Part shown: in pieces, positions 7,536-58,470 of the stretch
Layout: every line of letters begins with the position of its first letter
Position numbering within the stretch: position 1 is the first letter of the stretch
From: Ranitomeya imitator
Lineage: Eukaryota
DNA length: 64,000 nt
Reading direction: 5' to 3'
Assembly (NCBI RefSeq): GCF_032444005.1
Contig: NC_091282.1
Coordinates: 353,958,001-354,022,000 of the forward strand
Made by a program: the position numbers and the translations under genes
The notes under the pieces: model-generated
What the model was told of the DNA's origin: nothing
Database searches by the model: none
Seen by the model: only the letters and a program-made list of their open reading frames with translations

Positions 7536-9509
7536 GGTTATAAAATAGGAGGAGCACAGGAGTGTTTAAAAAAAGTACAAAAATACTTTATTAGCACCTA
7601 AAATATTCCATATTAATCACACACAAACAAGTGTGTGATTACTCCTCTTGAGAAAGCATGGCGATTTAGCAGCAGAAATGTGAGTCGGGGTTGTTCACTT
7701 TTGCTGCGGTGGTGTGTCTGCGACTTGGTAAGGTTATATATGTCACTATTAGTATATACATATTTTAATGGCTTACTATGCCAAACTTGCATATATACAG
7801 TAACTTTTTTGTTCCACATTCATGTTTGTACCTCTGAAGGGATATCATTGATTCTTTTTGATATGGGAGATTTAAGTAGTGTTTTCCCTATCTGAGGCAG
7901 TATCTAATTAACCCTTTTACCCCCGAAGGTGGTTTGCACGTTAATCACTGGGCCATTTTTTTAAAATTCTGACCACTGTCCCTTTATGAGGTTATAACTC
8001 TGGAACGCTTCCAATGGATCCCGGTGATTGTGACATTGTTTTGTAGTGATATATTGTACTTCATGTTAGTGGTAAAATATCTTCGATAATACTTGTGTTT
8101 ATTTATGAAAAAAAGGACATATTGCGAAAATGTTTACAATTTTGCAATTTTCAAAATTTTAATTTTTATGCCCTTAAATCAGAGAGCTATGTCACACAAA
8201 ATACTTAAAATGTAATTTTTGGAACCCCAAATTTGTTTTGGTTAGGAAGTTATAAGGGTTAAAAGTTGACCAGCGATTTCTCATTTTTACACCACCATTT
8301 TTTTTAGGGACCACATCACATTTGAAGTCACATTGAGGGGTCTATATGATAGAAAATACCAAAAAGTGACACCATTCTAAAAACTGCACCACTCAAGGTG
8401 CACAAAACCATATTCAATTAGTTTATTAACCCTTCTGGTGATTCACAGGAATTTTTGGAATGTTTGAAAAAAAACACGAACATTTAACTTTTTTTTTTTT
8501 TCACAAAAAAAAATTATTTCAGATCCAAATTTTATATTTTGCAAAGGGTAACAGGAGAAATTGGACCCCAAACATAATTGTACAATTTGTCCTGAGTATG
8601 CCGATACCCCATATGTGGGGGGGAACCACTGTTTAGGCACATGGCAGATCTCAGAAGGGAAGAGTGCAGTTTGACTTTTTCAACGCAAAATTGGCTGGAC
8701 TTGAGATCGGACACCATGTCGGGTTTGGAGAGCCCCTGATGGGCCTAAACAGTAGAAAACCCCACAAGTGACAGCATTTTGGAAACTAGACCCCCAAGGA
8801 ACTTATCTAGATGTGTGATGAGAACTTTGAACCCCCAAGGACTTCACAGAAGTTTAGAACGTAGAGCCGTAAAATAAAAAAAAAAAATCTTTTTTTCCAC
8901 AAAAATGATCTTTTCGCCCCCAATTTTAATTTTCCCAAGGGTAACAGGACCCCAAAAGTTATTGTGCAATTTGTCCTGAATACGCAGATACCCCAGATGT
9001 GGGGGTAACCACTGTTTGGGCATATGGCAGAGCTCGGAAAGAAAGGAGCGCTGTTTGACTTTTTCAACGCAAAATTGGCTGGAATTGAGATTGGATGCCA
9101 TGTCGTGTTTGAAGAGCCCCTGATGTGCCTCAACAGTGAAAACCCCCACAAGTGACAATTTTGGAAACTAGACCCCCCCAAGGAACTTCTGTAGATGAGT
9201 GGTGAGAACTTTGAACCCCCAGGTGTTTCACTAAAGTTTATAACGCCCGAGGGTGAAAATAGAAAAAAAAATTAAATATTTTTTCCACAAACATGATCTT
9301 TTAGTCCCCAATGTTTTATTTTCCCAAGGGTAACAGGAGAAAACAGGATTTTTGGTTGCTTACCGTAAAATCTGTTTCTCAGAGCCTTCATTGGGACCAC
9401 AGGAACCATGGGTGTATGCTGCTGCCACTAGGAGGCTGACACTATGCACAAAATTTTTTTAGCTCCTCCTCTATAGTGTACACCCCACGACTGGCACTAT
9501 GATAATCAG

Positions 9510-10610
9510 TTAGTGAGAAGGCAGTAGGAGAAACAACAAACTGAAAGAACACAAAACAGACATCTGAACTGTAACCATGGAACACAAAAAACAAAGGGAG
9601 AGATCAACATGGGAGGGTGCTGTGTCCCCCAATGAAGGCTCCGAGAAACAGATTTTATGGTAAGCAACCAAAAATTCTACTTTCTCCATCGCTTCACTGG
9701 GGACAGAGGAACCATGGGATGTCCCAAAGCAGTCCCTGGGGAGGGAAAAGCAGACTTCCATCAGGTCGAAGAACTCACCACTGCCGCCTGCAGTCCGTGT
9801 AGGTATGGACCCTATAAAATTTGGCGAACGTGTGGAGAGAAGACCAGGTTGCCACTTTGCAAAGCGGTAGGGCGGAAGCCCTATGGTGCACCGCCCAGGA
9901 GGAGCCCACTGCCCAGTAGAGTGAGCCTTGATCTCAGGAGGAGGCACTCTGTTCTTGACCCAGTAAGCCTCCAAGATTGCCGTCCTGATCCAGTGAGCAA
10001 TAGTCACCTTGGAGGCCAGCAGGCCTCTTCGCGTGCCATCTGGAATGACGAAAAGAGTCAGTCTTTCGAAAAGAAGCGGTTCCAGCCAGATAGGCCCTCA
10101 CTGCCCTGACCAGGTCTAGCTTGTTCAATGAAAGCTCCAGAGGATGAGTCAGAGCAGGACAAAAAGAAGGTAGAACAATGTCCTCATTGAGGTGGAAGGC
10201 GGACACCACATTGGGAAGGAAGGCGGAGGCCGCAGGACCACCTTATCCTGGTGAAGAACCAAGAAAAAAGGGCGACAAGAAAGGGCCGCCAACTCTGAGA
10301 CGCGCCTGATGGAAGTGATGGCACGAGAAAGGCCACCCTCCAGGGCAGAAATAACAGAGAAACCTCTCTGAGAGGCTCAAAGGGAGAATCTTTCAGGGCC
10401 TCCAGGACTAGATTGAGATCCCACTGATCCACGGGAGCCTGGTATGGAGGAGCTGCATGCGCTACTCCCTGAATGAAGGTCTTGACCTGATAATGTCTTC
10501 TGAAAAAGAATGGAAAGCACCGATACTTGACCCTTTAGAGAACTAAGGGCAAGACCCGCATCCAGTCCCACCTGTAGAAATGCTAAAATAGAAGGGAGAG
10601 AAAAGAACAT
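9510..10610 (-). pseudogene. DIRS tyrosine recombinase (frameshifted)
   Basis: Fragments WDLNLVLEAL..PFEPL, VSAFHLNEDIVLPSFCP, LDLVRAVRAYL, IAHWIRTAILEAY, IKAHST. Confidence 0.85.
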
Positions 10611-10999
10611 AGGTGGGATATGATTGGAGGGCCCGTTTCAACTGGTGCAAGTTCAGGTTCGATAGTAGATCCTGCAGGACGACGCCTGGATCATGGTGTG
10701 AATCACCCGATCTGAAAAACCGGACTCTTTCAGAACTGCGGTTTCAACAGCCATGCCGTCAAACTGAGCGAACGAGAATTCGGGTGGCAGATTGGACCTT
10801 GAGACAGCAGATTGGATTTGTCTGGAAGCCTACAGGGAGTGTCCGCGAGAAGGTTGACAATCTCCGCAAACCCAGACCTTCTGGGTCAATCCGGTGCGAT
10901 CAGAAAGACTGGCACCCCTCAACCTTGATCATCTTCAACAGCTTGGGAAGAAGAGGAAGGGAAGGGGAGATGAACTGAGGGACCTTCCTGTTCAGTCAG

Positions 11000-12750
11000 G
11001 ACACCATGAGGTCCACACCCGGAGTCCTCCATAGAAGGCAAATCTGATGGAAGACCTCCTGATGCAGGGACCATTCCCCTGCAGCAAGGACCTCGCGGCT
11101 GAGAAAATAGGCGGCCCAGTTGATGCCGCTGGGGATATGCACTGTGGATATTGCTGGAACTGTCACCTCTGCCAAAGCAAAGGAACTCAGAGTCCCTTCC
11201 CTGGTGGGTGACATATGCCACTGCCATGACATTGTCCTTCTGAATTTGGATTGGCAGACCCCTGAGAAGACTTTATCGAGGACATTGATCGGCAGCGCAG
11301 ACTCCTGTGCTGACTAACGACCCTGGACAGTCAGGGTCCCCCCAGCCGAAAAGGCTGGCGTCCGTTGTCACCACCTGCCAGTGAATGGGAAGGAACCACC
11401 GGCCCTGGAAGATGAGGGGTGATGTCAGCCACCAATTGAGGGACCGTTTAACCAGGGACGAGAGCCGAATTAGAAGATCCAGAGAAAGGACAGACTTGTC
11501 CCACTGCCAAAGGATGGCCTGCTGAAGTGGTCTTGAGTGGAATTGAGAGAAGGCGATTGCCTACAACGTTGCCACCATCCTCCCTAGGATCTTCATGGCT
11601 GATCGGAAGGAGGGATGCCGAGGGCCCTGAAGCAAAGGAACTTGCTGCCAGAGAATTGCTCTCTTCTCTTCGGGAAGGAAAACTCTGGTCTGACGGGTGT
11701 CTAACAGCATGCCTAGAAGCACGAGGCGCTGAGTCTGAACAAGCCAGGACTTCTTCCTGTTGACAAGCCACCTGAAATGGGACAGAGTGTCGAGGACGAT
11801 GGTCAGACTTTCGTGAGCCTGGGAAAAAGACAGAGCCTTAATGAGGATGTCGTCGAGGTACGGAAAGAGAACTAGACCTCTGATCCTCAAAATGTCCATC
11901 AACGCTGCCATGATCTTTGTGAAAACCCTGGGAGCGGACGCTAGACCGAACGGCAGGGCGACAAACTGGAAATGCTCCTGATGTACCGCAAAACGCAGGA
12001 ATTTGTGATGTCTTGGGAATATAGTGACATGAAGATAGGCGTCCTGAATGTCTATGGTGCACAGAAATTCCTGCGCCTCCATGAAAGCGATTACTGAAAG
12101 AAGGGACTACATCTTGAAATGTCGCAGTCGGACCCTTTAGTTCAGTAACTTGAGGTCCAGAATGGGCCGAACCGCGCTGTCTTTTTTCGGCACCACAAAC
12201 AGGTTTGAGTTCTCTATCTGGAACGGGAATGATTACTGCCGAACTGAGGAGGGAGGCGATGGATGCAAAGAAACCCAGGATCAGAGCGGGGTCTCTTGGA
12301 AGGCAGGATTCGAAGAATTGATCTCGGGGCCAAGGAACAAATTCTATTTTGTATCCTGAAGCTACAACCTCCCTGACTCATGCGTCCTCCACCGAGTCGA
12401 GCCAGACGTCTCTGAAGGAAAGGAGATGGCCGCCCAGCTTGGGAAAAGCGCTGGGGTCTCGGTGAGAGTCATGTCGAGGTAGACCTTCAAGGTCAAGACA
12501 TGGTGGATCTGCCTTGGGTGTAGCGGGAGCGCCAAGGTGTGGGGCTAATTGAAACTTTCTTCTTATCCTGGTGAGCCTGCGGCCTCTGTTGGTGGGAGAA
12601 GGACTGCCGCCGTGAAATGACGAAAGGGACGAAAAAACTGAAACTGCCGCTTCAGAAGAGGATGGCGAGGTTTGGACTGGGGGAGAAGGAAGCTTGTGCC
12701 CCCGATGGCGTCCTAAATAATTTTGTCCATCCTGGAGCCCAAAAGACATG
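11000..12750 (-). pseudogene. DIRS reverse transcriptase / RNase H region (frameshifted)
   Basis: ORF 11561-12082 with RT motifs; flanking frames give RNase H-like fragments (WQAVHIPGVDNWAAD-like). Confidence 0.85.
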
Positions 12751-23048: not shown

Positions 23049-25302
23049 GCAGCAGCATAATAATGATTTTATTTACATAGCGCTAACATATTCCGCAGCG
23101 CTTTACAAATTATAGAGGGGATTTGTACAGACAATAGACATTACAGCGTAAGAAAAACACAGTTCAAAATAGATTTCAAAATAGATACCAAGAGGAGTGA
23201 GGGCCCTGCTCGCAAGCTTACAATCTATAGGAAAAAGGGAGACACGAGAGGTGGATGGTAACAATTGCTTTCGTTGTTCGGACCAGCCATAGTTTAAGAT
23301 CGGGTGTTCATGTAAAGCTGCATGAACCAGTTAACAGCCTAAGTAGGTAACTGTACAGACACAAAGGGCTAATAAATGCATGAAGTGTATGAGAACATGA
23401 TGTGAGGAACCTGATTATGTTGTTTTTTTTTTTGAATGGGCCACACAGGGATAGTTAGGTTAATGCTTTGAGGCGGTAGGCCAGTCTGAACAAATGCGTT
23501 TTTAGGGCACGCTTAAAACTGTGGGGATTAATCGTATTAACCTGGGTAGTGCATTCCAAAGAATTGGCAAAGCACGTGAAAAGTCTTGGAGACGGGAGTG
23601 GGAGGTTCTGATTATTGACGATGCTAACCTCAGGTCATTAGCAGAACGGACAGCACGAGCAGGGTGGTAGACTGAGACCAGGGAGGAGATGTAGGGTGGT
23701 GCTGAGCCATGGAGTGCTTTGTGGATGAGGGTAATAGTTTTGTACTGGATTCTGGAGTGGATGGGTAACCAGTGTAATGACTGGCACAAGGTAGAGGCAT
23801 CGGTGTAACGGTTGGTGAGGAATATAATCCTGGCAGCAGAGTTCAGGACAGATTGGAGCGGGGAGAGTATGGTAAGAGGGAGGACGATTAAGAGTTACAA
23901 TAGTCAAGACGAGAATGAATGAGTGAAACAGTAAGAGTTTTTGCAGTGTCGAAAGTAAGAAAAGGGCGAATTCTAGAAATGTTTTTGAGATGCAGATAAA
24001 AAGAGCGAGCCAATGATCGGATGTGGGGGGTAAAGAAAAGCTCGGAATTAAGGATGACCCCAAGGCAGCGGGCATGTTGCTTGGGAGTAATGGTGGAACC
24101 ACACAATGTCAGGCAAAGGTAGGTTAGTAGAGGGAGAGAACAAGAGGAATTCAGTTTTAGACAGGTTCAGTTTAAGATAGAGGGAGGACATGATGTTAGA
24201 GACAGCGGTAAGACAATCACTGGTGTTTTCTAAAAAGGCAGGCGTGATACTAGGAGAAGAAGTGTATAATTGGGTGTCATCAGCATAGAGATGGTACTGG
24301 AACCCAAATCTACTGATTGTTTGTCCAATAAGGGCAGTATACAAAGAAGAGGAGGGGGCCTAGGACTGATCCTTGAGGAACCCCTACAGTAAGGGGAAGG
24401 TGAGAGGAGGAGGAACCAGCAAAAGATACAGTGAAAGAGCGATCAGAGAGAAAGGAGGAGAACCAGGAGAGAACGGTGTCCTTGAGGCCGATGGAGCGGA
24501 GCAGTGAGGAGGAGCTGATGGTCCCCAGTATCGAATGCTGCGGAGAGATCCAAGAGAATTAGCATGGAGTAGTGACCATTAGATTTAGCTGTTAGTAGGT
24601 CATTAGAGACTTTAGTGAGAGCAGTTTCAGTAGAGTGTAAAGAGCGGAAACCAGATTGAAGACTGTCGAGAAGAGTGTTATCTGCGAGATCGCGTAAAAG
24701 ACGGGAGTGGACCATGCATTCGAGGAGTTTAGAGATGAAGGGAAGATTAGAGACAGGTCTATAACTAGCAGCACAGTTTTGATCGAGGGATATTTTAATG
24801 GATGTATGATGGCATGCTTAAATGAGGAGGGAAAAATACCGGAAGAGAGAGAAAGGTTGAATATTTTTGTTAGGTGAGAGGTGACAGCTGGGGAAAGGGA
24901 CTGGAGGAGATGTGACGGAAAGGGGTCACTGGTGCAAGTGGTCGGGCGAGAAGATGCAAGGAGCTTGATTACTTCTTCTGTGACTGGTTCAAAGTCAGAG
25001 AGTGAACTAGATGCAGTGGGGGAGGGAGGACAGTGCATGGTATGAAGGGATTGGGAGATAATTTCCTGTCGAATGTGGTCAATTTTTTCTTTGAAGTAAT
25101 TGGCCAGATCATAAGCGCGGAGATCTGTGGTTGGGGCCTGCACTCTTGCGTTGAGTAGGGACTGGAAAGTGTCAAAGAGACGTTTAGGGTTATTGGACAG
25201 TGAGGTGATGAGGGTGTTAAAATAGGTTTGTTTGGAGAGGTGAAGGGCAGAGTTGTACGTTTTAAGAATGAACTTATAATGGATGAAATCTTCGGGTAGA
25301 TT
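23049..25302 (-). mobile_element. 5'-truncated L2/CR1-clade LINE inserted in Harbinger
   Basis: RT fragments ([79 protein letters not shown]); (taa)-like 3' tail; probable TSD ttctccac (23041-23048 / 25303-25310). Confidence 0.9.
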
Positions 25303-25747
25303 TTCTCCACAGATGTTCGGCGCACCTGGAGCACCGCTGCAGGAAACGTGTTTGCAGCGTGTGCCACGGTTGTCGCCGTCTGTGCTGCATCCAAAGAAGC
25401 GAATATCTGCTGTGTAGTGTCTCTATATATAGAAAACCCATAAGCCACGCCCATTGGAAAATACCGTACGCATTACGCATAAACAACGCAAACGCATGCA
25501 AAAACATGCAATCGCAGCTTTTTTTGACATCATGCGTAAAAGCATGTGGATAAAAAACGCCGCGTACACATGCGTTTTTTTGCATGCAGACGATACGCTG
25601 TGGACACATACGCAAATGTGAACTTAGCCTTACATGGATGGAGTGTGTGGCAAACATATGCACAAGATGAAAACGCCAAAGCACGACAGCATGCTAAAAG
25701 TCCAGACTTTTTTTTTTCTATTTTGCTTTTTTCTAGAGAGTAGCAAT

Positions 25748-29703: not shown

Positions 29704-29800
29704 CTCGCCCCCAGCGCATCCAAACAGAGAAATTTCTAGCACTGTCATCTTCAAGCAGCTGGATCAGATAGTATTTATTGTTATTAAACTGCAGGTTTGT
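29704..29800 (-). CDS. parp2: PARP2 exon (97 bp) containing the WGR signature
   Basis: TNLQFNNNKYYLIQLLEDDSARNFSVWMRWGR; ttttcccag| and |gtgag. Confidence 0.97.
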
Positions 29801-32892: not shown

Positions 32893-33081
32893 NNNNNNNN
32901 NNNNNNNNNNNNNNNNNNNNNNNNNNNNNNNNNNNNNNNNNNNNNNNNNNNNNNNNNNNNNNNNNNNNNNNNNNNNNNNNNNNNNNNNNNNNNNNNNNNN
33001 NNNNNNNNNNNNNNNNNNNNNNNNNNNNNNNNNNNNNNNNNNNNNNNNNNNNNNNNNNNNNNNNNNNNNNNNNNNNNNNNN
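32893..33081. other. Assembly gap (189 N)
   Basis: N run. Confidence 1.
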
Positions 33082-40969: not shown

Positions 40970-42907
40970 AAAAAAGGCCCAAAATCCGTACATTCCAAAA
41001 ACTTTCACAAATACGACCGTATTGAAAGCCCTGACTGCATACAGGGAATATCAGGGCACATAACGGTCTAATGATACATGTTGATTTATGCTTCATAAAA
41101 GCAGTTTGATCACCATTTATGATATTTGAAATGACCTTTTGCCATCAGTATTAACTAATGAAATCAGTCTATATGATATTCAATACATAAGGGATCTTTA
41201 CCAGTTTTTAATAACCGTATAATTATCGCTTCCCTCATCGTTTGAAGGAGCAAACCCATCTCTAAAGAAACGTTCCAACGTTTCTTCAATCTAGCAAACA
41301 CAGCATTTTTAAAGCTAAAACATGCTTTCTTAATGTATCTTCAATTAGAAGCTTTCCATATTTTACAACCTCTTTTTGCCATTTCTCAAAATTTGTATCC
41401 ATGGCAGTAAGATTATAGTGATGCCAGATTCATGTAGGTTGTTTTGCAGTGCTATCTTTTTTTCTGCACACCTCGTAGTGCTAACTTTGCACAAATCCCC
41501 CACCCACCCAAAACACCTGTTTTGCTTTGCCATTTTTTTGCAAACTGTAGCTTTTTATTTTTTGGTCAACAAACTCATGGGGCAATTTTCTTTTTGTGCT
41601 GGACGTATTGACATTTGTGCGTCAGTTTGATTAAAACACGTCACCACTTCTGCATTTATCACCCACTCCTGGTTTTGGCTTACAAATACTGATGTAAAAT
41701 ACTGACCCAATACTGCTAGTGTGACGGCAGCCTAATAGGTTTTATCAGTGCATTCTGCTTCTTTCTCCACTTAGGAGACATATTTTCTTCAGCCTCCTCA
41801 ACTCATCATCCACTCGGAAAAACTACTCAAAACCCACTGCAGTATCATGTTACACATTCTATTATTCTCTATAAAAACTATAACATTTCTTCAATGATGC
41901 TGCTGCTTCTGTCAGTGAGCTAAGGAACGAAGAGCAGAAATCCTTCTATGTGCTATGGGTGGGAGAGATTATACCACCTAGTCTCCTACCACTAGCTGAG
42001 AGTTAACTGCAAATTAGGAAAAAGGCTGCAGAGAAGAAAACTGCAGGATACACGTCAAAATGGCCAGACAGTGTTATTCTTCCATGTACACACACAGCCA
42101 CTTCTGACAAGAGATTAATATAATTACCCTTTAAGCATACTGACAAAATAAAACACAGACACACGTTTTACTTAAAATTATTCATTAAACCATAAAATAA
42201 ATATTTTTCACATAACATGTAAAAAAAATAAGCACCCTCCCTCCCCTGTAAACTTCTCAATTTACTGTAAAAATACACCCCCGATAGCAAACCTACCCTC
42301 CCTACCCATAAGAAACCCCAAAATAATAAATCATTTTCATTGCAAGAACAGCTAAACCTGAAGTGGCCATTGATGCACACAGTCGAGCATTAGTTACCAT
42401 CTTCTTGACCTGAAAAAGGCTGCTTTATAGGCAGCACAGTGAAGGCAGATAACCTACGACTTCAGGTTTAGAGTCCCTTTATACAGAAATGTTTTAAACA
42501 AAGAAAAGCCCCCCAACAAGCCTGCCAACCCAGAGTGATTACATAACCCCCAAACATTTACAAAATGGAGAAAAAAAAAAAAAAGGATTCCCCAGTCACT
42601 TGGGATGCATACCTCCATTCTTTAAATGGAACCAAAATTTTATATATATATATATATATGCAAAAAAAAAAAAAGTGGGAGAAGAGGAATGAAATGAACC
42701 AAAATGGGAGGTAGTGGTGGGAGGAAAATTGATGGGGGAGGGTAAGGGGTTGTATATTACAGTCTGAAACAGGCGAGGAAACACTGGGTATGGAAGGTGG
42801 GAAAACAAGTGTATAAGGAGAAGGAAGAGGAGAGAAAGGCAAATGAATAAGTCACAGAAGGAGGGTATTAGGCTGTTAACGACATAAGAAATTTGTCACA
42901 GGAAGCG

Positions 42908-43391
42908 TTATTGAGTTTGAGGTGACTGGTACTGCGAACTTCCCGTTTGTGGGGTGCACGCCATTCGGAGATTAGCCACCAATGTGTCGACCTCAGGTGG
43001 GTAAAAAGGGGGAAGAAAATACTCTACAGAGCTGAGCACGTAAGCCATAAACCTTGATCGACTAGGTTCAGGCAGCCAACGTATTCGGTCGGCCAGCGTG
43101 CGGCTAAACGCATCAGCATCATCCTCAGCCCAGGTCCTCCGTAATAGGGCTAGAATTTCATCATCCAACTCCTGTGTAATCTTGGCCCTGCTACGGATAA
43201 TACATTTCCCCCCTGTTTTGGATGGTGGCACACGGGGAGGCGGGGGCACAGGTTCAGTACTCTGTCCTGCGATGGCAAAGTCAATGTTTGCCCCCTCAGT
43301 TTCCACAACAGGTGGCACAAAAGAGCCTTCAAGTGGTTCACTCTCCTTTGGCTGGGGCAATCCCACTTCTTTGTCCAGACCTGACGAAGTC
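42908..43391 (-). CDS. MADF-BESS gene exon 4 (to TAA stop), acidic/Pro linker plus BESS-like motif
   Basis: ttttgtaacag| TSSGLDKEVG...EDDADAFSRTLADRIRWLPEPSRSRFMAYVLSSVEYF...QTQ*; phase 2 in, matching exon 3. Confidence 0.8.
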
Positions 43392-44754
43392 CTGTTACAA
43401 AAACGGAAAAAAAAATACATGTTAAAATTGTATACAGTATAAATTGTAGATGTTTCAAGAAGTGCTCCATCTTGTAGCAAATACCGTTTACAAGATTTAC
43501 TAGATGGCAGTCAAAGAAAAATGAACAAACTTACTAGAGTACACTGTGTTCTAGAGTCACACCATTTTCTCATTCTGTCTCAGCTTCAGGAGTAAATGTT
43601 TGGAATCCAGGGGAGACATCCACTGACCATACTTGCCAACTCTCCAGGAACACCTGCGAGGTTCCCACATAAAGAGGAGACCTCTCAGACTCCTGAAAGG
43701 GTTGACAAGTTTCCCAGGAACCATCGAAACCTCCTGGAAAGGAGAGTTGCAGGAAACTACCAACTTTAGCCAGATGCTGTGTCAGCAGACTCAGCCCTAG
43801 TGACAGAAGAAGCACGTTCGGCAGGAGGTTTGGCGCTAGAACTTAAATTTTAGCCTCGGTGGCAGGAATATTTGGTCTTGCTGCGGCGATTGTGTGAAAA
43901 AAGTGACACTCTGGCATCATCTGTTTTGGTTTGAGGTAGGTACAAAGCTGCACCCGTTACCAGCCTTAGTGTGCTATACAATGCAAATCACTGCTCTGCT
44001 TCCAGCATTATAGTCCTGATGCCAGGGTATACTCAAGATTACGGCTCATGAAGAGCCACTAGGTACACCCCTATGTGTCAGTTGTGCTTACAGCACCTTC
44101 TGTACGTGGCATTATTTTATCTACTACATTTCTGAAATGTATGTAGACAGCTATATGTATGGCGACCACGTAAACCCAAATATTAAATGACATCCTCTGG
44201 GATTTCATCATTTCCACATGGCATTTGTTCAAGAATCTGGATGTGGATTTTATTTTGGTGGTGTTGGAAGGGGTCATGTGGTATTTGTGATTGAAACTCT
44301 ATGATGTAGCATGTTCTATATAAAATGTGCGGAGCACAATAAGCAATAATTTTGTGGTGTGTGCCACTTTATATTCCTGTGTGGAATCTCCTTCACGTCC
44401 TTTTTCAAAAGTTGTTAAGTGCCAGAGACATCTGTGGATGGACAGAGCACTCAGTAAACTAGTTTAGAGACAGGCTTGTCAAATCAGTTGCCTATAGAGT
44501 GTGGGAATGAATGAATGTATGTATGTACGTATGAATGTATGTACGTATGTATGGTCTACAGCCAACCAATAAAAGAGGCAATGAATAAGTATTCCAACAA
44601 AGCCCCATCCAAAGCGAGTCGTTGGCAGTGTAAACAAAAGATACCGGAGCAGATTCTGTACTAGCCTATGTTTATTACCATTACATCACAGTATCCACAG
44701 AACATTACATTTTATTACATTCACCCCATTAAATGTTAAATGTACGATGCTTAC

Positions 44755-44908
44755 GGGCAAGGTGGCCTGATTGACCTGAGGAACATCAGCTGATGTAAAT
44801 ATTGGTAACGTTTGCGCTTTGAAGGAGAGGACCCAGTCTTTTCTTCCATTGACATCTCCTTGCGGAACCTGTCGCGCACTGACCGCCATCTATTTTTGAC
44901 ATCCTTCT
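44755..44908 (-). CDS. MADF-BESS gene exon 3 (154 bp)
   Basis: gctttcag| EKDVKNRWRSVRDRFRKEMSMEEKTGSSPSKRKRYQYLHQLMFLRSIRPPCP |gtaagc; MADF helix 3 (RW..VRD.F, Y.Y...L.FL). Confidence 0.85.
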
Positions 44909-45137
44909 CTGAAAGCAGAGTAATAAGAAAAAAAAAGTTATAGAAACTGCATATAAACACCCTATGGAGGTTGTCAAGCTGGAAACAAATGCAATGAAGT
45001 AGTGATTATGATCGAGGTAGATATTTCTCCTGGACTTTATCAGTCATGCCACACTACAGTTTATGCTCATCTAAATGACTGACAGGTTTGACTGGTAATA
45101 GATTGCATAGCAGAAGAAAAAGGGAAAACACACTCAC

Positions 45138-45279
45138 CAATTGCCCCCTGCTCTTTGATGGTGAGCCCATCCCATGAAGGGTACAGGTGGCGGAAGATGC
45201 TTGTCCATGCGTCTTCTCTCGCCTGCCGGTCACTGTATCCCTCTGCTCCAGCATCCCAAAGCTCAGGATGAGTTTCAAC
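45138..45279 (-). CDS. MADF-BESS gene exon 2 (142 bp)
   Basis: aatgcag| VETHPELWDAGAEGYSDRQAREDAWTSIFRHLYPSWDGLTIKEQGAI |gtgagt; first half of MADF (LWD..Y.D...R..AW). Confidence 0.85.
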
Positions 45280-45482
45280 CTGCATTAGAAAAAAAAAAAT
45301 ATGGGGGAAAAAAAAGGAAAAGACCATTACTAGAAATTCCTTGCATCATAAAAAAAGTAAAGTTTGGGAAAAAAAATAAAAACTACTTAAAAATTGTGAT
45401 TGCAGAAATAAATGTAAAATAACACACGGAAATCAATACATGACAAAGATACTCAACAGACCATTCCAATGGCGTTACTCAC

Positions 45483-45515
45483 TTGCTGAATGAGGTGCTT
45501 CACATTTATGGACAT
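45483..45515 (-). CDS. MADF-BESS gene exon 1 (coding part, ATG at 45515)
   Basis: MSINVKHLIQQ followed by |gtgagt donor; phase 0. Confidence 0.7.
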
Positions 45516-46459
45516 CCTTTGGTGGGATGTCAGTTTCACATTTGATTTCTGCAGCTCCCAGTCCTGTTCCCTGAAGCAGTCGGTCATAAAATGCTGCCGT
45601 ATTGCTTCCTGTTATTAATTTGCATGTTTGACAGAGTCAGAAACTTATATGAAACTTCATGTAAAAACCGCATGTTAACACGCACATGGGTTTGCATTTT
45701 TAGTTTTTTCGCCTAATGGGGACAATGATGTGACATTCGGTTCCAGCGATACTTTACACTTAAAATAAGGTTACAGCGAATCCCAGTTTGCTGTAAGAAT
45801 GTCAATTCCAACAGATTTTCTTTTTGATAGAAATAATTTTGTAAATGCATTATTGCAAGGACCAATTATTTACAGTCATATTGGTTAAATGCTTTGTGAA
45901 AATGGCCGCCGAAACAAAGGATGCACTTATTTTTGGCAGGAAACTAATATTATATATATTTTTTTTTAATGGAGATTTTTTTTTTTTTTAAATCACTTTA
46001 TAGTTTGGCCATATTGGAGAAGCTTTATTTCAGTTGCAATGAATAGGAGTTAATTGACCAAGAAATATAGCCCCTGACCTAGACTAGTAAGTTGCAATAA
46101 AAGCACACAGAATTCAAGCTTCAGATCAATAAAAACACCAAAAATTAACGTTTACGTGTTTATTTAGGTCAAGTTTTTATTAGTCAGGCTCATTAAATTG
46201 GAATAGACCCTTTTATTTCGGATTATGTACTTTACTGTTATATGGTTCTTTGTATAGAATCTCAATGTTTTTATGCAATCTGATCTTGCGTAGTTAGTAA
46301 CAATCTGCACTAATCAGCATGTAAGGATCTTACTGAGGTATAACACTAAATCTCATATACAAAAAAAGCAATGTCTTAAAAAAAAATTCCAAACACATGC
46401 AAAATGTAACATTGATCAAAAACGTATGAACACATGTACAGAGAACAGACGTGACTTAC

Positions 46460-46510
46460 CTGGTTCAGCATAACATCGTACACCTCTTCACCTTCACTAT
46501 AAACATGAGC
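46460..46510 (-). CDS. parp2: PARP2 exon (51 bp), start of WGR domain
   Basis: AHVYSEGEEVYDVMLNQ resembles PARP2 AHVYCEGNDVYDVMLNQ; tcttctag| and |gtaagt; phase 0/0. Confidence 0.95.
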
Positions 46511-47079
46511 CTAGAAGACAGATCATAAAGGGATAATAGTTAAGGGGTATTTTCAAGTTTTTAAATTGCTTTAATTAGCATCAAAATAATCAAGTTTGCC
46601 ATTTGCTTTTTCTATCTCCTGTCATTCTCCAGCTGTGAGAGCTTTAATCTTTTATAGCGTACAGCACGTTTCCATAGAGATTAGCTTTCAGACCCGGCAA
46701 AGGGTGCATAGTAGATACATTTCTGGAGCGGAGTTAACTTAACACTCCGCTCTTAACCTACTGATTTCTTTTTTTTTTTTTTTTTTAATTCGTTTATTGG
46801 TTCAGAATAAACAAACATTGAACACATTTGCATTATCATTAATTATACCATGGAATACAAATAGTTGCAAAACATTGTCGTACCAAAGATTACAAAGGTA
46901 GTGGAGTGTGCATGTTAAATCATTAGATCCTTATAAGAAAATACCTATTATACAACTTTAACCATTAATAGTGAGTCGCCAAAAGGAAAACAGATTTAAA
47001 TCCTGCTCTATAAGTGATGCCCCCGAAAACCACAAGCCCACCTTTCTATGTAGATGTCTAATCAGTGCAGACTATAGAG

Positions 47080-47241
47080 CAGAGGTCCCCAACTCCAGTC
47101 CTCAAGGCCCACCAACAGGTCATGTTTTCAGGATTTCCTTAGTCTTGCCCAGGTAATAATTGCATCACCTGTGCAATGCAAAGGAAATCCTGAAAACATG
47201 ACCTGTTGGTGGGCCTTGAGGACTGGAGTTGGGGACCTCTG
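47080..47241. mobile_element. 162-bp palindromic hAT MITE inserted at the L1 ORF2 stop / 3'UTR boundary
   Basis: cagaggtccccaactcc ... ggagttggggacctctg; 8-bp TSD ctatagag (47072-47079 / 47242-47249). Confidence 0.92.
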
Positions 47242-47396
47242 CTATAGAGTACGATAAGAGGAATTCCATCTGCCCCATATCTTTTCGAATTTACCTGGAC
47301 AACCTCTATTTTGATACATTGTTTTTTCATATGGGATAATCGAATTCACCAGATCAATCCAAACTCTAAGGGTCGGGGGGGAGCCACCCATCCATC

Positions 47397-50300
47397 TTAA
47401 CGCCAATACTTTCCGTGCCAAAAAGAGCGTCTCTCGGAGAAAGATCCCAGTATAATGATCCCAAGTCTCCTCATCCCACACCCCGACAAACAGGTCAATG
47501 GCCTGAGCGGGACAGGGATTGACAGTAAAGACGTTAGTAATGTCGTGACCTCACTCCAGTAATGAAGAACTACAGGGCACCTCCAAATCATATGAATAAA
47601 ATCTGCGTCAGGCATATGACACCGTAAACAATCTGACGAATGTAAGCAACCCATTTTAAAGAGTCGTGTCGGGGTCAAATAGGTCTGATATACTATATAC
47701 AACTGAGTCATCCTATTATTGACTGAGGGTGAAACTGTAGTTGGAGATTCTAGAATATCCTCCCATTCCTCTCCCAGTACATCAGGAAGGAGTTCCTCCC
47801 ATTTCCCTCTGACAGAATTGATGACAGACCCATCTCCCACGGATAGTAGATATGTATATAGAGTGGAAAGGAGTCCTTGAGGACCCTGTGAGTTGAGGAT
47901 ACCTATCAAAGGTAAAGAAGAGATCGACCGAACCGTATCTACATTCCGTATGTGCGACTGGAAGGCTGATCTTAATTGTAAATACCGGAAGAATTGAGAC
48001 CTCGGGATGTTGTAATTATTCTGTAGTTGTTCAAAAGTTACAAAAACCCCCTGGTCATGTACATCGCTCACCGAGAGAACACCGCAGGAAATCCAAAAAT
48101 CAGTAGATGGGTGATTCAGTAATTCTGGTAGATAACTATTATTCCACAGTGGCATTTCAGCTATGACATCCACAAAATTAATAACTTTTTTAATTTGTCT
48201 CCATACCAATCTCGCCAGCCGGAGCATAGGCAACAGACGACAAGTACCAACTTTCTCCATCTCCAAGAATCCCAGTGGGCAATCAATCCGGGCAGAATGA
48301 ATTAAATGACTCTCGGAATTAGGTAGGGAGCTATTAGGCATCCACTTACTTATCGCCCTGGCCTGCCCGGCAAGGCAATACAGATAGAGGTCTGGTAGGG
48401 CCGCCCCACCCCCCTTTTTTGGTCTCTGTAGAATAGATAGTTTGAGTTTGGGCCTGGTCTTCCCCCATATAAAGGATGTGATTAAAGAGTTTAAATTTGC
48501 AAAAAATGACTTGGGTATTGGTACAGCACTATGTTGAAAACCGTAATTGAGTTTGGGAAGCAGTATCATTTTAATTAGATTAATGTGGCCTGCAACAGAG
48601 AGGGGGAGTCTACTCCAGGTCATAAATTTAGATTTGATCAAATCCAACAGTGGATAAATGTTAAGTTGTAGGTCTAACCGACTATATTGAGACATATGAA
48701 TACCCAGATATTTGAAATTGGAAACCACAGGTAGCGACGTGAGAGTCCCGAGACAGGGAGCCGGAGTATGAGATAAAGGCATCAGGGCAGATTTATCCCA
48801 ATTTATATATAGACCGGAGAATTTACTAAATTTATCTATGGTCGCTATCACTTGTGGTAGAGATTCTTCTATTTTATCCATAAATATTATCATGTCATCA
48901 GCATAAAGACCGATGGTATCCACACGACCCGCGATATTTATTCCTTTAATATCTGTGGAGGACCTTATGCGTATTGCTAAGGCTTCTATCGTGAGAGCAA
49001 AGAGAGCCGGGGATAAAGGACATCCCTGACGGGTTCGCCTATGTAAGGTAAAAGAATCAGAGGTGGAGTTATTTACAATTACACGCGCCCTGGGATTTTT
49101 ATACAGTGTGTCTATCCCCCTAATAAATGTCTCTCCAAAACCATATTTCTGCAGACACGCAGAGAGAAAAGGCCACCCGAGAGAGTCGAACGCCTTGGCC
49201 GTATCCAGCGATGCCAGCGCCCAACTATTATCCGGCTCTAAAGAGCTATATTGAATCACCGATTGGACCCGCCTGATATTGATAGAAGTACTTTTCCCAG
49301 GCATAAAGCCTGTTTGATCCGGGTGTATAAGGTCTAATATGAGCGTATTTAGTCTAGTGGCCAATATTTTAGTGAAAATTTTGTAATCTACGTTTACTAG
49401 TGATATGGGGCGATACGATCCGCATTCCAGAGGGTCCTTCCCTTCTTTAAGTACAATAATGTTTGCATCATAAAATGTTTCGGGCATGAATCCTCCCTCC
49501 CATATACTCCGAAGTACCTTCAATAAAAGTGGTGCCAATTGACCCCGATATTTCTTATACAGCTCAATAGGAAACCCATCAGATCCAGGGGCCTTCCCGG
49601 TGGCCATATCCATTATAGCTTGCCCCACCTCCTCCAAAGTGAACTCAGCCTCCATAAAGGCTTGCTGAGCTGGACTCAACGAGGGGAATGTTATATCCGA
49701 TAAATAATCTGCACATTCAGGGACACCGAAACCCCCACTAGACTTGTATAAAGATTTATAGTAATCATAAAAACACTGGAGGATCTCCTCAGTAGAGGAT
49801 ACCAATGAACCATCAGGTGCCCGGATCTGTAGTACCGTATCAGATGTGTTGTGCTGGCGTACTAAAAAAGCCAATAGTTTGCTGGCCTGGTTCCCCAATT
49901 CGAAATAGGACTGACGGGTAAAAAACAATTTGCGTTTTGATTTTATGTCTATATGTTGAGTATATAACCTTTGGGAAGTAAGCCATGCCACCCTGTTGCC
50001 ACTAGTTTGGCTGGCTACATAAGCGGTCTCGGACTCCTTCAGCCGTCGCTCCATCTCGTCATCCTCCCCCACCGTCATCCTTTTAATATAGGAAATTGTG
50101 GAAGACAGACATCCCCTTAGATATGCTTTTAAAGTATCCCAGAATAGACCAAAATTTGAGGGGTCTGGGTGAGTAAAGATAAAGCAGTTCAGCTGATCCA
50201 CCGTTCTATCGCTAGAATCTATTAATTTCAGCCAGAAGGGATTCAATTTCCAGGGTATAGTATTATTTGACTGACCGTATTTAAGTTTAAGAATAACTGG

Positions 50301-51005
50301 GCTGTGGTCCGATATCCCCCTATTGCCATGCTTAACACTATCCACCCATAATGCCAGGTCACTAGATCCAAATATATAGTCTATACGAGACAGAGACCGT
50401 TTAGTTGACGAGTGGCAAGTGTAATCCCTCATCTCAGGGTGACGTATTCTCCATAGGTCCAGCCATCCGCTACCGTTCATAAACAGTGCCAATTGAGAAG
50501 AGGATTGAATAGAAGGGCCCCCAGATATCCCATCGTCCAGTCTCAATCTATCTAAGGAACTATCCATAACTAGGTTAAAATCTCCCATACAAATAATACT
50601 AGCATCAGGATAATTTAGGGAGAATCCCATTGCCATACGGAGAACCGATATATTAGCTGGGGGTGGGTTATAGATGCACAGTATCACGTATTCCCTTGTG
50701 TTAATAAAGGCGTGCACAAAAACAAAGCGACCTTCGGGATCTCGTCTTGCCTCCCTGGCCTCCCACCTAACACTTCTATGGATTAGCAGAGAGACCACTC
50801 TTGAATAGCTGGTATGGAATGCGTGGAGGGACCACTGTACCCAAGGCTTTTGTGTACATTTAGCTGTGTCCCTGGTCAGATGTGTCTCTACAAGTGCTAC
50901 CACATGGGGATGATACCGCTTAATGTGTGAAAATACCTTGATTTTTTTACGGAGAGTCTTAATACCCCGTATATTCCAAGTCATACATATAATCTCAGAC
51001 CCCAT
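47397..51005 (-). CDS. L1 ORF2p (APE endonuclease + RT + C-terminal Cys motif), 1202 aa open; native C-terminus (to stop at 47242) shifted by one frameshift near 47480
   Basis: TWNIRG, LVETHL, MGDFN, SRIDYIF, SDHSPV; YRPISLVNVD, LDTAKAFD, RQGCPLSP, LYADD; CLRC...FIHMIWRC. Confidence 0.95.
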   Translation of the reverse strand: MGSEIICMTWNIRGIKTLRKKIKVFSHIKRYHPHVVALVETHLTRDTAKCTQKPWVQWSLHAFHTSYSRVVSLLIHRSVRWEAREARRDPEGRFVFVHAFINTREYVILCIYNPPPANISVLRMAMGFSLNYPDASIICMGDFNLVMDSSLDRLRLDDGISGGPSIQSSSQLALFMNGSGWLDLWRIRHPEMRDYTCHSSTKRSLSRIDYIFGSSDLALWVDSVKHGNRGISDHSPVILKLKYGQSNNTIPWKLNPFWLKLIDSSDRTVDQLNCFIFTHPDPSNFGLFWDTLKAYLRGCLSSTISYIKRMTVGEDDEMERRLKESETAYVASQTSGNRVAWLTSQRLYTQHIDIKSKRKLFFTRQSYFELGNQASKLLAFLVRQHNTSDTVLQIRAPDGSLVSSTEEILQCFYDYYKSLYKSSGGFGVPECADYLSDITFPSLSPAQQAFMEAEFTLEEVGQAIMDMATGKAPGSDGFPIELYKKYRGQLAPLLLKVLRSIWEGGFMPETFYDANIIVLKEGKDPLECGSYRPISLVNVDYKIFTKILATRLNTLILDLIHPDQTGFMPGKSTSINIRRVQSVIQYSSLEPDNSWALASLDTAKAFDSLGWPFLSACLQKYGFGETFIRGIDTLYKNPRARVIVNNSTSDSFTLHRRTRQGCPLSPALFALTIEALAIRIRSSTDIKGINIAGRVDTIGLYADDMIIFMDKIEESLPQVIATIDKFSKFSGLYINWDKSALMPLSHTPAPCLGTLTSLPVVSNFKYLGIHMSQYSRLDLQLNIYPLLDLIKSKFMTWSRLPLSVAGHINLIKMILLPKLNYGFQHSAVPIPKSFFANLNSLITSFIWGKTRPKLKLSILQRPKKGGGAALPDLYLYCLAGQARAISKWMPNSSLPNSESHLIHSARIDCPLGFLEMEKVGTCRLLPMLRLARLVWRQIKKVINFVDVIAEMPLWNNSYLPELLNHPSTDFWISCGVLSVSDVHDQGVFVTFEQLQNNYNIPRSQFFRYLQLRSAFQSHIRNVDTVRSISSLPLIGILNSQGPQGLLSTLYTYLLSVGDGSVINSVRGKWEELLPDVLGEEWEDILESPTTVSPSVNNRMTQLYIVYQTYLTPTRLFKMGCLHSSDCLRCHMPDADFIHMIWRCPVVLHYWSEVTTLLTSLLSIPVPLRPLTCLSGCGMRRLGIIILGSFSERRSFWHGKYWR

Positions 51006-58336: not shown

Positions 58337-58470
58337 NNNNNNNNNNNNNNNNNNNNNNNNNNNNNNNNNNNNNNNNNNNNNNNNNNNNNNNNNNNNNNNN
58401 NNNNNNNNNNNNNNNNNNNNNNNNNNNNNNNNNNNNNNNNNNNNNNNNNNNNNNNNNNNNNNNNNNNNNT
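58337..58470. other. Assembly gap (134 N)
   Basis: N run. Confidence 1.

Follow-up and report, generated by a model that had tools for sequence, protein, structure and literature searches.

The CSB-PGBD3 protein of primates is produced where a piggyBac-derived gene lies in sense orientation inside an intron of ERCC6. Splicing links a host donor with an acceptor at the start of the inserted open reading frame (ORF); the host N-terminus is kept, the stop codon and poly(A) site of the insert are used, and the catalytic part of the host protein is dropped. This fusion is a major product of its locus. Here we describe a similar arrangement at the parp2 gene of the frog Ranitomeya imitator, in a stretch of 64,000 nucleotides (contig NC_091282.1 of RefSeq assembly GCF_032444005.1, forward-strand positions 353,958,001 to 354,022,000). 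We call this whole stretch the window, and count coordinates from its first letter. A four-exon MADF gene (45608/45587 to 42908) lies there inside a parp2 intron, on the same (minus) strand as parp2. The original prediction, made from the letters of the window, was that the parp2 exon upstream is spliced in frame into this gene. Comparison with the orthologous loci of other frogs leads us to think it fairly probable, for R. imitator, that chimeric parp2::MADF mRNAs are made. The geometry is that of CSB-PGBD3: the insert lies in sense in an intron of the host and has an acceptor that matches the frame of the host donor upstream. The same parts of host and insert would be kept and lost. The frog case differs from the primate one in that the nested gene has four exons and encodes a protein of the accessory type, not a transposase, appears to have a separate mRNA as well, offers three acceptors, and belongs to hyloid frogs.

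Two further classes of gene are related to this arrangement. In the host-transposase fusions of tetrapods, as described in Cosby et al. (bioRxiv 10.1101/2020.05.07.082677), a transposon-derived DNA-binding domain has likewise been captured onto host exons by alternative splicing and is under purifying selection. The parp2::MADF arrangement differs from those fusions in that the captured protein is no transposase and the host contributes two WWE domains, not KRAB or SCAN; the main text of that preprint names no PARP, MADF or Harbinger case. The domesticated Myb-like/MADF genes of PIF/Harbinger transposons (NAIF1, and DPM, APM and LPM of insects; PMC9710019) resemble the nested frog gene in encoding proteins of about 300 amino acids, in their conserved synteny and low dN/dS, and in having no transposon ends. 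Unlike them, the frog gene is nested in a host gene and apparently spliced onto it; no partner transposase was found nearby, and its Harbinger origin is presumed.

Further likenesses are gene models from two other frogs, Leptobrachium leishanense (A0A8C5Q3T1 and A0A8C5Q2Z2) and Ascaphus truei (FKM82_005207), in which a DNA-binding gene of transposon type, located in an intron, also follows the WWE-containing N-terminus of PARP2. The Ascaphus model shares the ...MLNQ donor with parp2::MADF but carries zf-BED, and Leptobrachium uses another MADF-BESS gene, in an upstream intron. As modelled, these chimeras are separate events, known from gene models alone. A search of one literature library found no paper that names both PARP2 and MADF, and in the databases the chimeric proteins sit under 'hypothetical' or 'MADF domain-containing' names. 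The parp2::MADF arrangement is therefore presented as a probable new case of the class of fusions between a host gene and a transposon protein.

New regulators are known to arise when a host gene captures a transposon-derived DNA-binding domain through alternative splicing. The partner would be unusual here, being the poly(ADP-ribose)-binding WWE pair of PARP2 minus the enzyme. Should the chimera prove to be a real protein, it would link ADP-ribose signalling to sequence-specific chromatin targeting, and would amount to a natural separation-of-function form of PARP2. Should the chimeras be noise and nothing more, what is left is an ordinary domesticated gene nested in an intron. Annotation is affected as well, since pipelines call the locus one gene, call it two genes, or miss the nested gene.

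Splice junctions in the window and in deposited frog proteins

The proposed fusion donor belongs to the parp2 exon at 46460..46510 (minus strand), which encodes AHVYSEGEEVYDVMLNQ, the start of the WGR domain, and ends in phase 0 (...MLNQ) at the donor CAG|GTAAGT. The next canonical parp2 exon, at 29704..29800 on the minus strand, reads TNLQFNNNKYYLIQLLEDD (TNLQFNNNKYY)...MRWGR, and its acceptor at 29800 lies 16.7 kb from the donor at 46460. When frog PARP2 proteins were compared with the window by tblastn, residues 259-423 were found at 46510, 29815, 26205, 17452 and 6641. These are the WGR-region exons in PARP2 order, and the closest protein was the PARP2 of R. imitator itself, with a mean identity of 91.7%. 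No parp2 exon was found above 46510 within the window in the same search.

Exon 1 of the MADF gene, in the form used by the fusion isoforms described below, occupies 45483..45608 (minus strand; 126 nt, 42 codons in frame) and is followed by the donor CAA|GTGAGT after 45483. It has two in-frame acceptors, A with 45608 as first exon base (AG at 45610-45609) and B with 45593 (AG at 45595-45594). Exon 2, at 45138..45279 on the minus strand, begins VETHPELWD... and has a strong phase-0 acceptor at 45279, with a 75% pyrimidine tract ending ...TGCAG. The second half of the MADF domain is encoded by exon 3 (44755..44908, minus strand). The coding part of exon 4 (42908..43391, minus strand) specifies a linker and a conserved C-terminal BESS-like region, up to the stop codon TAA at 42910-42908. 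The exons of the window were searched and compared singly, and deposited orthologues were used for comparisons of whole proteins. The coordinates underlying the original prediction hold: the donor exon and the exon-2 acceptor are both in phase 0, the next parp2 exon is 16.7 kb away, and the MADF protein stops at 42908. Exon 2 had been put forward as the place where the donor is joined; its acceptor is indeed strong and in phase, but it is not the only candidate, A and B being in frame as well. Agreement of phase has a chance of about one in three for each acceptor, and is not beyond chance. The fusion interpretation carries weight because of proteins deposited for relatives, and not because the phases agree.

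These proteins come chiefly from Engystomops pustulosus. Its gene GDO81_001957, at the orthologous locus, has six annotated products (KAG8596523-28). Two are full PARP2, of 768 and 733 amino acids, and four are chimeras in which PARP2 residues 1-275, with 100% identity to PARP2, are followed by MADF sequence. The 533-aa product KAG8596528.1 (P0010, 'hypothetical protein GDO81_001957') is joined directly to MADF exon 2. Its junction, ...AHVYSEGEDVYDVMLNQ|VETHPELWD..., is the same as the predicted ...MLNQ|VETHPELWD, and the protein continues to the MADF stop; it was the top match to the MADF orthologue P0006 in an exhaustive search of representatives, its residues 272-532 being the MADF protein from exon 2 on. 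In a 574-aa product (P0160) the junction is MLNQ|EALRQHFMTDCF..., at acceptor A in MADF exon 1, and in a 569-aa product (P0280) it is MLNQ|HFMTDCF..., at acceptor B, 15 nt past A. The fourth chimera (P0279, 581 aa) is like the 574-aa form with seven further residues from an alternative exon-3 acceptor. The AGs at the E. pustulosus junctions are canonical and are orthologous to 45608, 45593 and 45279 of the window. Pfam finds two WWE domains and MADF in the chimera (profile positions 3-84 in P0010), without the WGR and catalytic domains, the loss of which had been foreseen. A model from Dendropsophus ebraccatus (P0005) independently joins MLNQ to acceptor A.

The E. pustulosus chimeras differ in part by five and seven codons at their acceptors, and we infer that such variants are typical of transcript-derived rather than ab initio models. 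They would be explained by the JGI IGC pipeline, because it adds alternative transcripts from aligned assemblies. That pipeline, using homology and Trinity transcript assemblies, produced the E. pustulosus annotation (PMC10794172).

Most likely, three kinds of mRNA would be made at the locus. The first would be canonical parp2, with 46460 spliced to 29800. The second would be a standalone MADF mRNA, starting inside the intron and encoding about 294 amino acids from the ATG at 45587. In the third, the donor at 46460 would be joined to the acceptor at 45608, 45593 or 45279, and the mRNA would contain MADF exons 2-4 and end at the MADF poly(A) site. The parp2 pre-mRNA would cross the nested gene, and its donor would meet three in-frame acceptors 0.85-1.2 kb on, well before the one at 16.7 kb. 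Joining to exon 2 would result in a short mRNA, in which exons 3 and 4 follow, up to the poly(A) site of the MADF gene. Its predicted product has the tandem WWE domains of PARP2, the basic linker and the first WGR residues. An almost complete MADF domain and the BESS-like tail come next, and the catalytic domain is missing. Canonical PARP2 is annotated for every frog among the matches listed, and the exon trap would therefore be partial. From its domains, the chimera would couple poly(ADP-ribose) reading to sequence-specific DNA binding; it may be a working protein, a decoy or noise.

RNA from relatives and competing explanations

A word search with exon 4 led to a 269-aa protein (P0001, 93% identical) on a 1399-nt Logan cDNA contig (L001, run SRR3901720). 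This contig maps to the window in four blocks, with borders at 45483/45279, 45138/44908 and 44755/43391, and is thus spliced through MADF exons 1-4; its 5′ untranslated region (UTR) follows the intron without a break. The contig opens with 51 nt that were considered as the 51-nt parp2 exon, and this assignment was rejected, as they too are colinear with the intron. Another 14 cDNA contigs, from a second relative (runs SRR5149xxx), cover MADF exons 2-4 in spliced form. In the standalone cDNAs exon 1 reaches upstream to at least about 45840. Exon 1 has in-frame ATGs at 45587 and 45515, of which the upstream one is the more likely start codon, as in the RefSeq model of Leptodactylus fuscus.

The ends of these transcripts were compared with the window. 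Five of the relatives' cDNA contigs (L004, L006, L007, L008 and L010) share a 3′ end about 20 nt past an AATAAA, placing the probable 3′ UTR at 42320..42907 (minus strand). The window has AATGAA at the homologous position, 42341; no AATAAA or ATTAAA was found in it within 1.3 kb below the MADF stop, the next one being at 41559.

Several results weigh against chimeric mRNAs. None of the 15 cDNA contigs carrying MADF exons, from two relatives, includes a parp2 exon, and no Logan contig ORF with the fusion junction was found in protein searches. The RefSeq models of E. pustulosus among the matches are PARP2 of 736 and 733 amino acids only. In L. fuscus, RefSeq holds two separate genes, a 293-aa MADF gene read from the upstream ATG (XP_075133417) lying within a 736-aa WWE-WWE-WGR-PARP gene. 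The pyrimidine fraction is poor at acceptors A (0.40) and B (0.25). Phase compatibility follows from the conservation of each gene on its own, and gives no sign that the chimera is selected. MADF intron 1 (homologous to 45482-45280) is kept in each of the 14 contigs of the SRR5149 species despite intact splice sites, and in a parp2 contig from one of these runs (L017) the spliced exons 1-4 run on into about 980 nt of intron. The RNA sampled here therefore includes some unspliced precursor.

Much of this would be expected if parp2 and the MADF gene were independent, the latter with its own promoter, and if the chimeric models were rare read-through or splicing noise, or pipeline merges that give no stable protein or function. 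We regard this explanation as rather unlikely. It fits the splicing of L001 across all four MADF exons, the contigs of the second relative without a parp2 exon, the separate RefSeq gene in L. fuscus, and the lack of the junction from all 15 contigs and of any RefSeq fusion isoform among the matches. Moreover, the model from D. ebraccatus, a partial one, continues into an intron as ab initio merges do, and the PARP2::zf-BED models that the same annotation group produced for Ascaphus might mean a habit of the pipeline. Four isoforms with small variants at canonical AGs are, on the other hand, hard to obtain without spliced transcripts, and the strong exon-2 acceptor is transcribed 15.5 kb ahead of the canonical acceptor.

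The cDNA contigs themselves contain a further point against two independent genes. Two of them from different runs, L011 and L014, both start exactly at CAG|GAAGC. The trinucleotide CAG is the sole stretch that the last bases of parp2 exon 4 (...AACCAG) share with those of the intron (...AACAACAG). A break at this position would be expected in the assembly graph if reads spliced from exon 4 to acceptor A coexist with unspliced reads. The two starts are suggestive of such a mixture, and fit a real branch.

The sequence in front of acceptor A is conserved. Its AG is kept in seven of seven frog sequences, and the exon-1 region together with the 90 nt before it shows 90% identity; the block at 45611..45700 (minus strand) has about 90% identity in seven frogs. 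It includes a branch-point-like CTGAC at 45640-45636, 28 nt above acceptor A and with no AG between. L. fuscus no longer has acceptor B, and a 3-nt deletion in E. pustulosus keeps the frame. The block could instead be promoter sequence. A promoter composed of the octamer ATGCAAAT and an ETS-like CAGGAAG was considered; this reading is weakened by E. pustulosus, which is without the octamer yet keeps the AG.

In the opposite extreme to two independent genes, the MADF exons would have no promoter of their own and would serve chiefly as an alternative 3′ end of parp2, the 'standalone' contigs being partly spliced, intron-retaining parp2 RNA. This seems to us decidedly improbable. It would account for the E. 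pustulosus annotation, which has only fusions and PARP2 at the locus and no standalone MADF gene, and for that of Eleutherodactylus coqui, where none is annotated either though the gene is intact. The spliced parp2 exons and retained intron of L017 are of the kind expected, the long 5′ leaders of the contigs hold several upstream ATGs, and the roughly 90 nt before acceptor A are conserved as the flanks of alternative exons usually are. Against it stand the family members elsewhere, which are free-standing proteins from an MSINV-type ATG, and the 293-aa RefSeq gene of L. fuscus. No contig connects parp2 exons with MADF exons, L017 was found not to overlap any MADF contig from its own run, and canonical PARP2 is annotated in every species.

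Retention of MADF intron 1 changes the predicted start of translation. The first in-frame start is then an ATG 6 nt before the exon-2 acceptor, giving a 260-aa ORF (P0007). The window, L. fuscus and D. ebraccatus all have this ATG, and E. pustulosus lacks it. Taking these results together, we consider the original fusion interpretation partly supported, with chimeric mRNAs made alongside canonical parp2 and standalone MADF mRNAs as the reading we prefer.

Conservation, origin and family of the nested gene

L. fuscus, E. pustulosus, D. ebraccatus and E. coqui were all found to have the MADF gene in this parp2 intron. Only exons 1-2 were found in the parp2 intron of D. ebraccatus. The E. coqui orthologue (contig L019, 28601-31033) is intact, with 83-89% protein identity to L. 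fuscus. Exon-by-exon Nei-Gojobori comparison of the window with three species gave dN/dS values of 0.077-0.096, which indicate that the gene is under purifying selection. Insertion into the parp2 intron would predate the split of the sampled hyloid frog lineages.

The inserted gene had been described as an intronic transposon gene. A search for terminal inverted repeats around it gave A/T runs only, and no transposase ORF was found in window 42000-47500. As a test of Harbinger origin, the ORFs beside an E. coqui paralogue were compared with Pfam, and gave no match. The inserted gene is a long-conserved gene and not a recent transposon gene, and it lacks the marks of an active PIF/Harbinger element. 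Conserved synteny and dN/dS well below 1 are those of a domesticated gene, of presumed transposon derivation. PIF/Harbinger elements bear a second gene encoding a Myb-like/MADF protein (PMC9710019), and the most likely source of the nested gene would be the Myb-like second gene of such a transposon.

The MADF part of the MADF-BESS label given to the protein stands, and for the BESS part Pfam gave no match in it. Exon 2 matched the Pfam profile MADF_DNA_bdg (PF10545) with 27.5 bits (E 4e-06) and exon 3 with 30.4 bits (E 5e-07), the gathering cut-off being 22 bits; together the window exons span profile positions 5-84. The orthologue P0006 scored 60.2 bits over positions 1-84. With BESS (PF02944), no match was obtained for exon 4 of the window at a threshold as loose as E 10, and none for P0006 or P0010. 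When relatives were aligned, their C-terminal motif matched BESS in two of 26 proteins in one set and nine of 38 in another, with a best E of 7.6e-10. The nested protein thus appears BESS-like solely through its family relatives.

The family comprises 909 representative relatives at E<=0.001, which have in common the MADF domain and a C-terminal motif, ED..D.FG...R..P. Some relatives are themselves annotated as fusions. One BCCIP fusion and one DnaJ fusion are both joined at the position of the exon-2 acceptor (P0012, from assembly GCA_029499605.1 and adjoining a HEM4/UROS gene, and P0110), and in further relatives the MADF domain is preceded by KRAB or dephospho-CoA kinase (CoaE) domains. The MADF family may be a habitual exon trap.

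In the window, the stretch of MADF intron 3 at 43622-44677 is 1055 nt long, compared with about 310 nt in contig L002. The extra length of about 750 nt is probably an inserted repeat.

Other modelled PARP2 chimeras and neighbouring features

In the Ascaphus truei models of FKM82_005207 (P0180, P0286 and P0287), the same MLNQ donor is joined to zf-BED sequence. The Leptobrachium leishanense models (P0192 and P0188) involve a different MADF-BESS gene, with 25-36% identity, located in an intron further upstream; in one of them it supplies the 3′ end (498 aa), and in the other it forms a cassette exon within PARP2 (621 aa).

A more far-reaching account of these genes can be put forward tentatively, and we doubt that all of it will hold. 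The hyloid parp2 gene would have two outputs, an arrangement maintained over tens of millions of years: catalytic PARP2, and a WWE-WWE-MADF protein, conserved and regulated, that would both read poly(ADP-ribose) and bind to specific DNA. Intronic DNA-binding genes of transposon type would have been joined to the N-terminal WWE domains of frog PARP2 on at least three separate occasions (hyloid MADF, Leptobrachium MADF-BESS and Ascaphus zf-BED), and the MADF family would be habitually trapped as exons, as with BCCIP, DnaJ, KRAB and CoaE.

Eutherian PARP2 is a shorter protein. N-terminal WWE matches in Pfam were found in PARP2 of frogs, caecilians, reptiles, turtles, marsupials, sturgeon, teleosts and lamprey (P0161-P0278). 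The WWE-bearing PARP2 proteins of these vertebrates are mostly about 700-790 amino acids long, and no eutherian is among the matches listed. The part of PARP2 retained in the fusion is exactly the WWE part.

The parp2 intron above exon 46510 contains an uninterrupted ORF of 1202 amino acids at 47397-51005 (minus strand, the same as parp2), which belongs to a non-LTR retrotransposon and has an Exo_endo_phos endonuclease and an RVT_1 reverse transcriptase. Runs of N occupy 32893-33081 and 58337-58469 of the window. At 23477-25384 the window has 72% identity over 1.9 kb to positions 9476-11398 of a D. ebraccatus contig (L003). This match is inverted relative to the remaining synteny, and is probably a shared transposable element.

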